DNA of 22,692 nucleotides from Paramoeba atlantica. Its lineage: Eukaryota; Protista; Discosea. Where the stretch lies: positions 1-22,692 of the forward strand of contig CDRNVI010000107.1 in the NCBI GenBank assembly GCA_977017575.1. The letters run 5' to 3'. Under the pieces are notes generated by a model, which saw nothing but the letters and a program-made list of their open reading frames with translations, was not told the origin of the DNA and did not search any database. Below, piece after piece: positions 1,313-16,884 of the stretch (positions are counted from its first letter, which is position 1; each line of letters opens with the position of its first letter). Made by a program: the position numbers and the translations under genes.

Positions 1313-1317
1313 AAAAA
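1313..1317 (-). terminator. Pol III oligo-T terminator of 5S (present in every unit)
   Basis: TTTTT on the minus strand at and immediately after the 5S 3' end. Confidence 0.85.
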
Positions 1318-1435
1318 GAGTACAACACTCAGGGTTCCCGAGCGATCGCTCACCTCAGTACTAACTGAGCCTGACGGTGCTTAACTTCACAAAGCGAACG
1401 GGATGTGGTGTTTTCACCGTAGTATGGTCGTACCC
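1317..1435 (-). rRNA. 5S rRNA (unit 1)
   Basis: Minus strand reads GGGTACGACCATACTACGGTGAAAACACCACATCCCGTTCGCTTTGTGAAGTTAAGCACCGTCAGGCTCAGTTAGTACTGAGGTGAGCGATCGCTCGGGAACCCTGAGTGTTGTACTCT, 119 nt. Helix I (GGGTACGAC/GTTGTACTC), GAAGTTAAGC, GTTAGTAC and GGGAAC hallmarks are present, the ends resemble kinetoplastid 5S, and an oligo-T follows. Confidence 0.97.
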
Positions 1436-1534
1436 GGCGTAACTTGTGAAATCCCCACTATGAAAGAAATATTTTCCACGACAATCTGCCTCATCCTGAG
1501 TGTCCCACAGAGGCGCTACTCACCATGTTTACGC

Positions 1535-1545
1535 TAGCGCAGTGG
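1535..1545 (+). promoter_or_regulatory. Pol III A box pointing away from 5S, starting 100 bp from the 5S +1 (unit 1; repeated in all units)
   Basis: TAGCGCAGTGG fully matches TRGCNNAGYGG; 1535-1435=100. Confidence 0.6.
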
Positions 1546-1585
1546 CTTCCGGGGTTTTTATCATTCGAAAAGGTCACACGGGCTG

Positions 1586-1597
1586 AGGATCGAACCT
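1586..1597. promoter_or_regulatory. Quasi-palindromic Pol III B box (unit 1; repeated in all units)
   Basis: GATCGAACC on + and GTTCGATCC on - both fit GWTCRANNC; lies 41 nt after the + strand A box. Confidence 0.55.
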
Positions 1598-1656
1598 CCG
1601 TGCAAGTGTTTTGACATTCAGCACATGGCTACAGTTTGCCACGTGTTGCGAAAATT

Positions 1657-1732
1657 GACGGGGCGGGAATCGAACCAGGAGTTTGGTTCGTCAGTCTCAG
1701 AAAAGCACGCCCTGCCACTAGACAAGTTTCCA
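1657..1732 (-). promoter_or_regulatory. tRNA-like element with A box (1725-1715) and B box (1676-1666), divergent from the SL gene (unit 1)
   Basis: Minus strand TGGAAAC-TTGTCTAGTGG-CAGGGCG...CCT-GGTTCGATTCC-CGCCCCGTC. The B box is perfect, the A box is good, and the 38-nt gap is tRNA-like. Acceptor, anticodon and T stems do not pair, so it is not a functional tRNA. The A box starts 100 bp from the SL +1 (1825). Confidence 0.7.
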
Positions 1733-1824
1733 GGTTGCATTTTGGGCTAAGACTCGTGGAACAACAAGTTCATCAGTTTGACAAAAGCGAACAATGAGCT
1801 CTGGTGGTTGGTAAAGCCCTTGTT

Positions 1825-1933
1825 AACTTTAACGATAAAGATACAGTTTCTGTACCTTGTTGGTATGAGAAGCTTCGAACTCTAAGTTCGCTTGAAGGCC
1901 CCGGTTCCCGAGAAGGGAACTGGGGCTTATTTG
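1825..1933 (+). ncRNA. Spliced-leader (SL / mini-exon) RNA gene, euglenozoan type (unit 1); exon ~1825-1862, donor GT at 1863; 3' end uncertain
   Basis: AACT start, conserved ACAGTTTCTGTAC core and TTG|GTATGAGAAGC donor junction as in kinetoplastid/diplonemid SL RNAs. Stem-loop I (GTTTCTGTAC with GTATGAGAAGC) is intact. Further hairpins: CGAACT-CTA-AGTTCG (1876-1890) and a 12-bp stem GCCCCGGTTCCC-GAGAA-GGGAACTGGGGC (1898-1926). Confidence 0.88.
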
Positions 1934-2515
1934 CGTTACAATAACTCTGTCACCAGGCAGTCTGACTCGCAAAATCGGACTCCACCGATAAATAGGCAGG
2001 ATGGCATGTTCATTAACGTCTGAAAATCTGCGGCACCGCAATTTAAATCTGCACCCATCCTAACACATCACACAATATATCAACCAATCTTCTCGGTCAT
2101 CCGCAATCCCGGTCAATGCCTCCTACAAAGATCTCAACGACACCTATAATCAGGCCAGCAATCGTGGAAAATTTGTGCAAATCCAATATATGCATGAACA
2201 CCCTCACGGGTGGACCTTGTTTATCATACGCTCATTGGCGCAGAGATATTCCCCTTAATGCGACGGTCGATATCATCGGCACATGATCCGCCCACAACGG
2301 ATGTCGCACCAAGGGGCATTTGGAACGATAACACGAGGCAGAGTCACGCACAGCGGTACTCAAGGGGAAGTCTCAAGGGAAAAAAGCTCACTCAAAGAGT
2401 GAGCCGGGGAGGGGTAATGGGAAGCGCGTCCCCTGCTTCACCGAAGAAAGAGGGGCAGTTTCGCCCTTACTGCCGGCCGGCAACGGGCATGTAACAGTAA
2501 GACTCTTCCCGGTGC

Positions 2516-2582: not shown

Positions 2583-2659
2583 TACGGAACGTAAAAAATA
2601 GGTAGCCTCAATTGTGGTCCCGGTGAGGCCCCGGAGTTGCGAGAAGCCTCCATACCCCA

Positions 2660-2735
2660 CAACTACCACCTTCCCCCCCTATTTAGCGGGGGTCGCGCAA
2701 GCGACCCCTGATAAATGGGGGGAAGGTGGTAGTTG
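2660..2735. repeat. Long inverted repeat (unit 2)
   Basis: As 105-180. Confidence 0.93.
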
Positions 2736-3056
2736 TTTTGGGGGAAATGAGAGGCCGAACGCACGGAAGGGCCGGCCGGGCCATTGAGTCACGTCAAAGT
2801 GTGACGCTGAGTTCGTGGGAAGCAATTTGCGAAGCCCTAGGTGATGCTCAGTTGTATTGGGCGACACCGAGACAAACCACGGAAATCCCAGATACGACAA
2901 GGTCTAGATATCATAAAGAGAGAAAAAACCGGAGCTGTAGACGCGAAAAAGAATGACAGAGATATAACAATGCGATATGCGACCGATGAGTTGAGTCGAT
3001 GCGTGTGCTGACTCTACCTTCCACCGTCATTCACAGAAAATTAACAAAAAATGTAT

Positions 3057-14189: not shown

Positions 14190-14308
14190 AGAGTACAACA
14201 CTCAGGGTTCCCGAGCGATCGCTCACCTCAGTACTAACTGAGTCTGACGGTGCTTAACTTCACAAAGCGAACGGGATGTGGTGTTTTCACCGTAGTATGG
14301 TCGTACCC
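14190..14308 (-). rRNA. 5S rRNA (unit 6), G66A variant
   Basis: As unit 1 except C>T at 14243 on the + strand (G66A in the RNA). Confidence 0.97.
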
Positions 14309-16765: not shown

Positions 16766-16884
16766 AGAGTACAACACTCAGGGTTCCCGAGCGATCGCTC
16801 ACCTCAGTACTAACTGAGTCTGACGGTGCTTAACTTCACAAAGCGAACGGGATGTGGTGTTTTCACCGTAGTATGGTCGTACCC
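16766..16884 (-). rRNA. 5S rRNA (unit 7), G66A variant
   Basis: As unit 1 except C>T at 16819 on the + strand (G66A in the RNA). Confidence 0.97.

Follow-up and report, generated by a model that had tools for sequence, protein, structure and literature searches.

[quoted passage not shown] The A box keeps a nearly invariant distance of about 104 bp to the snRNA start and drifts in sequence, while the B box stays near-perfect (PMC4950102). The tRNA-like elements at the U2 and U4 genes are themselves transcribed, and an indirect role for the boxes, acting through chromatin, has been proposed (PMC4950102, PMC2784804). TFIIIC (Tau95) occupies the trypanosomatid U2 promoter; Tau95 is low at the SL promoter and was not detected at T. 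brucei 5S genes, SNAP50 participates at trypanosomatid Pol III loci, and no TFIIIA is known from this group (PMC10781861).

5S and SL genes share one repeat unit in Euglena, Diplonema, Papus and bodonids (PMC2784804, PMC10161547, PMC7859406), as they do at the locus studied here; unlike this locus, the other linked loci of our survey are without A/B elements, even where 5S and SL diverge. In L. major, the 5S genes are always associated with tRNA genes and so adjoin A/B-box sequence, as here; those tRNA genes are intact, there is no link to SL, and the accessible part of the report gives no fixed 100-bp divergent rule (PMC2695483). The dicistronic tRNA-5S genes of Yarrowia lipolytica, as far as the accessible part of their description goes, likewise provide a tRNA-type promoter for 5S without TFIIIA, with the tRNA upstream, on the same strand and co-transcribed, whereas the element here is on the opposite strand and decayed (PMC2566860).

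Here we analyse a 22,692-nt stretch of DNA (the window), the Paramoeba atlantica contig CDRNVI010000107.1, in which divergent 5S and SL RNA genes flank two A/B-box pairs. A sequence-only reading had proposed that a trypanosomatid-like extragenic promoter drives both genes from one compact bidirectional cassette. Judged by sequence features, the promoter type of trypanosomatid U2, U6 and 7SL genes probably extends to the 5S gene of this lineage; its extension to SL RNA is a reading that we favour by a little.

A repeat unit with divergent 5S and SL RNA genes

The window comprises nine tandem units of about 2,555 bp (2.55 kb). Every unit carries one complete 5S rRNA gene, read on the minus strand, together with a 20-bp minisatellite, a GA microsatellite and an SL RNA gene on the plus strand. 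In unit 1, the two genes diverge from starts that lie 390 bp apart (Table 1). The layout 5S<-A>B...B<A->SL recurs in all nine units, as the sequence-only reading had it. Across 690 positions spanning the cassette, at most 2 vary among the units; they are therefore one observation rather than nine, and we rejected their use as replication. The 5S start (+1 at 1435 in unit 1) follows from the full-length Rfam match. By sequence, the 5S gene is a Pol III unit, full length and with a T-run terminator, both in the window and in L022, a relative found among 66 SL loci that a pattern scan of metagenomes returned.

The minisatellite TATGACAGATAAGGGTGCAG (20 bp, 9-14 copies per unit; 502-708 and its equivalents) and the GA repeat (31-44 copies per unit) explain most of the length variation among units. 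A 5S variant with one substitution, at the equivalent of 1370, is found in the adjacent units 6 and 7 (5S at 14190-14308 and 16766-16884).

Table 1. Positions of genes, promoter-like elements and spacers at the first 5S-SL gene pair and downstream of its SL gene
Feature	Position	Strand	Remarks
5S rRNA gene	1317-1435	-	Rfam RF00001, 99.2 bits, full length; T5 Pol III terminator 1317-1313 (minus strand)
Spacer 5' of 5S	1436-1534	.	99 nt; length kept in L022 (~100 nt), sequence not (p=0.21)
tRNA-like element 1, divergent from 5S	1528-1612	+	A box (A1) 1535-1545, B box (B1) 1587-1597
T-runs of element 1	1555-1559; 1609-1612	+	internal T5; T4 beginning 11 nt after the B box
TTTGCCACG motif, between elements 1 and 2	1635-1643	+	identical in L022; single copy per unit
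tRNA-like element 2, divergent from SL	1651-1732	-	A box (A2) 1725-1715, perfect B box (B2) 1676-1666
T-runs of element 2	1704-1701; 1654-1651	-	internal T4; T4 beginning 11 nt after the B box
Spacer 5' of SL	1726-1824	.	99 nt; length kept in L022 (100 nt), sequence not (p=0.67)
SL exon	1825-1862	+	38 nt from AAC at 1825; donor GT at 1863; exon identical in L022
Conserved part of SL intron	1863-1941	+	two hairpins; fold z -6.0; conserved tail
Long hairpin, then TTTT (2736-2739)	2658-2739	+	first T4 downstream of the SL start; fold z -11.8

Two tRNA-like elements lie tail to tail between the genes

All four boxes that the earlier reading had named were recovered at their coordinates and on their strands (Table 1). 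In 9/9 units, the offsets are 100 from the 5S start to A1, 52 from A1 to B1, 49 from A2 to B2 and 100 from A2 to the SL start. The earlier wording that each A box lies exactly 100 bp from a gene start thus agrees with the measured values on both sides, with a margin of 1-2 bases on the SL side, where the start at 1825 is set by homology (an AAC start, with L022 identity from 1824). The single bidirectional cassette of that reading is better described as two separate tRNA-derived elements, convergent and tail to tail between the divergent genes, one per gene.

Position-weight matrices for A and B boxes were built from 101 tRNAs in the collected euglenozoan loci. With these matrices, the two A/B pairs are the top scorers of the whole 2,555-bp unit, one per strand (24.3 and 25.6), and the best pair made with any other B box of the unit scores 6.4. 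In dinucleotide shuffles of the spacer (n=2,000), an equal pair arose anywhere in one case for the plus-strand pair and in none for the minus-strand pair (p <=0.0005 per pair). Element 1 carries the caveat that its B box, B1, is a near-palindrome whose minus-strand score (15.5) exceeds its plus-strand score (10.9).

B1 lies within a small hairpin (1576-1606 of the window), and its minus-strand reading, GGTTCGATCCT, is the better B box. By analogy with the tRNA-Ala B box at the L. major U2 gene, this minus-strand reading could be a second B box for SL.

ARAGORN called 0 tRNA genes in the window or in L022, and Rfam together with ARAGORN placed neither a tRNA nor any other family in the 5S-SL spacer. 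Calls made by ARAGORN under relaxed settings were inconsistent across strands and species and were discarded. The elements fold no better than shuffles (z -0.29 and -0.75), with no cloverleaf with an anticodon arm. In 4/4 elements, two from the window and two from L022, the distance from the B box to the first base of a T4-5 run is exactly 11 nt, corresponding to tRNA position 74, and a run of T3-5 lies 20-23 nt after the A-box start. For element 2 of L022, the alignment to tRNA-Val(CAC) outscored every one of 200 shuffles in which the boxes were held fixed; the same isotype alignment gave no match for elements 1 and 2 of the window or for element 1 of L022 (p 0.4-0.9). The T-run at the distance of a tRNA-gene end, the tRNA-Val alignment and the conservation in L022 together indicate that the elements are decayed tRNA genes. 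Selection accordingly acts on promoter boxes, terminators and distance to the neighbouring genes, and not on the structure of an element RNA.

Boxes and spacing are kept in a relative while the flanks turned over

The relative L022 has an identical SL exon, a 5S gene with one difference (99% identical) and the same divergent layout, with the two genes 387 bp apart. Its A boxes lie at 101 on the 5S side and 101 on the SL side, and its A-to-B distances are 52 and 51. On the SL side, the A box TGGTCTACTGG, 101 bp from the SL start, is followed by a perfect B box 51 nt on; on the 5S side, a perfect B box at 153 accompanies a degenerate A box at 101 (score 3.0). The SL-side A box is accordingly the better conserved of the two. 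In contrast to this fixed geometry, the gene-proximal stretches of about 99 nt align between window and L022 no better than shuffles on either side (Table 1), with 30/100 ungapped identity in the SL-proximal spacer. The central block does align (p <=0.001), including the segment between the B boxes (p=0.001); the segment borders were placed at the boxes, a design that favours both box-containing segments. The bodies of the elements are strongly diverged.

Thus, the comparison with relatives that the sequence-only reading had proposed as a check comes out in its favour: L022 keeps both boxes and spacing amid flanks that have turned over. The cassette is real and conserved. Its conservation rests on one independent relative, L022, and pattern scans of viral and prokaryotic genome collections returned no further relatives.

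A third relative appears in run X5, a marine metagenome, with an identical SL exon (window 1824-1880) and 217 nt of upstream flank; its last bases upstream of SL (ACGTAGT) agree with L022 and not with the window.

Survey of other euglenozoan loci

A divergent pair scoring >=10 with its A box 90-115 bp away was found in 0/42 other 5S flanks and 0/62 other SL flanks, a survey of 104 distinct sequences, many of them from related lineages. The negatives include the nearest 5S relatives (L012, L013 and L032) and loci with divergent 5S and SL genes. Given this absence, the layout is lineage-specific and probably derived, on a 5S tree that is short and weakly supported. That tree contains no named reference sequences; neither the window nor L022 belongs in it to a 16-row clade of AACTAACGCT/AACTTACGCT-type SL loci (98/92), or to the clade taken as diplonemid from its SL. 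The lineage carrying the cassette is probably prokinetoplastid, hence early-branching among kinetoplastids, and possibly Perkinsela-like. The Perkinsela mini-exon, at 38 bp, has the same length as the SL exon of the window (PMC5601477 supplement). The SL primer published for strain CCAP1560/4, however, does not match the exon here, and for this reason the 468-bp SL intron described from Perkinsela has no assignable place on the window.

Other arrangements seen in the survey include head-to-head SL pairs, with starts 114-116 bp apart in one group (L012, L013, L028, L032, L039 and L051) and 162-176 bp apart in a second (L009, L052 and L053). Such pairs imply a common bidirectional SL promoter without A/B boxes. 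In the L012-type group, whose 5S is closest to that of the window, the distance from the outer SL to 5S is 392-405 bp, near the 390 of the window. At six loci (L058, L037, L021, L029, L046 and L011), SL genes of diplonemid type, some with 5S, lie in or beside dense tRNA clusters, with 45 tRNA genes in 7.4 kb at L058 and 38 in 7.1 kb at L037. Clusters of this kind are a possible ancestral setting for the capture of tRNA-derived promoters.

The SL RNA gene is active and its conserved part lacks T4 runs

The SL exon is trans-spliced: RNA contigs from run X6, whose species label is that of the window, agree with 1827-1862 and beyond that point turn into mRNA sequence of unrelated origin. As assembled contigs, they show junctions and not RNA ends, strand or level. 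With its conserved exon core, GT donor and exon on mRNAs, the SL gene is of the kinetoplastid type. Window and L022 share 90.7% identity across 1825-1941 and are unalignable beyond.

The conserved SL region has no AT4-6G Sm site between the intron hairpins. The motif TTATTTG (1927-1933), in the conserved tail, is a candidate Sm site (ATTTG, after the last hairpin) or weak terminator. There is no T4+ within 1825-1941 or in the L022 counterpart; for comparison, 47/57 distinct SL genes have a T4 <=120 nt from the donor, mostly as the mid-RNA Sm site. A canonical Pol III terminator is likewise missing near the conserved SL 3' end, where the nearest match is TTATTT (1927-1932). The first T4+ after the SL start comes at +912 in the window (none within 900 nt) and at +380 in L022 (T6). 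A mid-RNA T4 Sm site would stop Pol III, and we count the T4-free conserved SL RNA in favour of Pol III transcription. The loss of Sm proteins offers an alternative explanation for the missing T-run Sm site, since Perkinsela lacks SmD3 and SmF (PMC7859406).

Across about 80 bp upstream of SL, no element common to window and L022 was found, and control pairs of other kinetoplastids are often equally unconserved. The argument from this that the SNAPc site is missing was dropped after those controls.

Part of the SL exon near its 5' end (1830-1839; TAACG, ATAA) is predicted to pair with the 3' tail (1928-1938; TTAT, CGTTA), a pairing that would make the 117-nt SL RNA a single closed domain. L022 has the same sequence in both arms, with no covariation, and its minimum-energy fold differs. 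The last SL hairpin (1896-1928) shows one two-sided change between window and L022 (T-A to G-C) and one one-sided change, which supports the stem.

In some contigs a poly(A) tail stands directly upstream of the SL exon, with the junction at 1827 (run X1); in others the junction is at 1830, with one recurring foreign sequence (runs X1, X4 and X6). These joins look like insertions of SL-targeting retrotransposons (CRE/SLACS-like) elsewhere in the genome.

Proposed extragenic Pol III promoters for 5S and SL RNA

We read the two decayed tRNA genes as extragenic type-2 Pol III promoters that have both of their neighbours transcribed by Pol III, an interpretation with somewhat better than even chances. 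TFIIIC would bind each A/B pair and, from an A box about 100 bp away, recruit TFIIIB and Pol III to the first base of its divergent neighbour, the mode of action established for the trypanosomatid U1, U2, U3, U4, U6 and 7SL genes. Element 1 would serve 5S, by a route that possibly has no need of TFIIIA. Element 2 would serve the SL RNA gene, whose RNA would then be made by Pol III and capped in the way in which the lineage caps its Pol III-made snRNAs. Capping would be no obstacle, since trypanosomatid U2 is a Pol III transcript with a methylguanosine cap. Pol III on the SL gene would need a weak terminator or yield a long RNA. Perkinsela is reported to have an SL intron of 468 bp and intron copies dispersed in its genome, and long SL transcripts have on this account already been proposed in the group. 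We infer factor binding, the polymerase and the assignment of each element to its gene from the features described above.

The trypanosomatid precedent that the earlier reading had invoked is apt: the geometry matches that of the divergent A box about 104 bp from snRNA starts (PMC4950102). As in the promoters of the trypanosomatid U1, U2, U3, U4, U6 and 7SL genes (PMC4950102, PMC2784804), divergent A and B boxes, an A box at about 100 bp, a near-perfect B box, a drifting A box and no cloverleaf occur together. The A box lies at 100-101 here versus 104-106 in trypanosomatids, and the A-to-B distance is 49-52 versus 30-44, figures for which the papers may count other box edges. The trypanosomatid class also has an intragenic element in the first 21 nt, which here is inseparable from conservation at the RNA level. 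Two differences concern the genes themselves: the neighbours here are 5S and SL, neither of which has been reported with such a promoter, and two tail-to-tail elements stand between two genes. By all the sequence features compared, the cassette appears to fit the trypanosomatid extragenic Pol III promoter, the SL terminator excepted.

The SL gene resembles those of trypanosomatids (Pol II, with SNAPc/TBP/TFIIA, TFIIB, TFIIH, Mediator and TFL; PMC5829719) in being tandem, individually transcribed and the source of a trans-spliced exon, and differs from them in its tRNA-like element at -100, the absence of an AT4-6G Sm site and the absence of a T tract after the gene.

For 5S, the step is modest because the gene, which ends in a T5 terminator, belongs to Pol III already and no trypanosomatid TFIIIA is known, although Tau95 was undetected at T. 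brucei 5S. The 5S half of the interpretation, taken alone, is probable, and likelier than both halves together. For SL, the step is large, since trypanosomatid SL genes use a Pol II complex and have no C82. The geometry kept in L022 despite unalignable proximal spacers counts for Pol III promoters, as do the tRNA-gene features of the elements (T-runs and tRNA-Val alignment), the absence of the layout from the other flanks surveyed and the trypanosomatid pattern of a near-invariant A-box position, a drifting A box and a near-perfect B box; the conserved 100-base geometry suggests that the cap-donor SL RNA is made by Pol III here, versus Pol II in trypanosomes. Pol II transcription of SL, the absence of C82 and the low Tau95 in trypanosomatids count against the interpretation, as do the single independent relative and the weak 5S-side A box of L022. 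The earlier proposal of an extragenic promoter for both genes is thus upheld in its geometry and its conservation in L022, and weakened by the lack of a T4+ terminator within 900 nt of the SL start.

The missing terminator near the SL 3' end counts specifically against Pol III on SL and speaks for an arrangement in which element 1 drives 5S by Pol III and SL stays with Pol II. Element 2 would then bind TFIIIC and have an indirect effect, through exclusion of nucleosomes from the SL promoter, recruitment of TBP/SNAPc or insulation of the Pol II gene from the Pol III gene. We consider this arrangement possible but rather unlikely. The SL gene is transcribed by Pol II in every kinetoplastid tested, SNAP50 acts at trypanosomatid Pol III loci, and the indirect chromatin role of the boxes has precedent as a proposal (PMC4950102, PMC2784804); yet a barrier needs no fixed distance, and of the two A boxes it is the one on the SL side, at 100 in the window and 101 in L022, that is better conserved. 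A T-free SL RNA is, moreover, a requirement of Pol III, and a T tract is also the usual end of kinetoplastid SL genes transcribed by Pol II, which makes its absence here unexpected whichever polymerase is at work.

The elements could also be independent of their neighbours, as small tRNA-like RNA genes (like trypanosome sRNA-76) or as boundary sites, which seems improbable to us. Terminators exactly at tRNA position 74 in 4/4 elements, conservation of the central block beyond the boxes and the transcription of the tRNA-like elements at trypanosomatid U2 and U4 are in keeping with such genes, but the bodies are strongly diverged between species and fold no better than shuffles, and the T-run 20-23 nt after each A-box start would abort most transcripts. 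The fixed 100-bp distance to both genes would also be left unexplained. That the pairs arose by chance, or are neutral remains of two tRNA genes trapped in the repeat, is very improbable and already largely refuted: euglenozoan SL and 5S genes do often lie among tRNA genes and concerted evolution copies the contents of a unit, but boxes, terminators and both 100-bp distances are kept amid saturated sequence, and equal pairs are very rare in the shuffles.

Returning to Pol III promoters for both genes, the promoter type itself is already known, and what would be new is which genes use it. That the architecture was not known to be described, as the earlier reading had put it, agrees with our literature search, which covered few subscription papers and found no description of the cassette, the SL sequence in no relevant context and no link of Perkinsela with Pol III promoters. 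We see about even chances that the lineage moved SL from Pol II and SNAPc, and 5S from an internal TFIIIA-type promoter, to a tRNA-like Pol III promoter. Polymerase switches of small RNA genes have precedents in plant U3 and, as far as the accessible part of the source describes it (PMC2943599), in T. brucei tRNA-Sec. If the interpretation is true, all small structural RNAs would run on one TFIIIC-TFIIIB system and the source of every mRNA cap would be an RNA made by Pol III; the cap-supplying gene would have undergone a natural polymerase switch. The one well-defined kinetoplastid Pol II promoter might then be dispensable, and SNAPc/TFIIA-type factors are predicted to be open to reduction or loss. 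The 5S half would give a concrete answer, for this lineage, to how kinetoplastid 5S is transcribed without a known TFIIIA.

Sequences downstream of the SL gene

Just 3' of the GA microsatellite lies a near-perfect hairpin of about 80 nt (2658-2739), which was not found in L022. Together with its TTTT, it may mark where a long Pol III transcript stops. Parts of 2217-2494, downstream of SL, are matched by diverged contigs with loose ends; these matches suggest dispersed copies of the SL 3' flank, perhaps derived from long SL transcripts.
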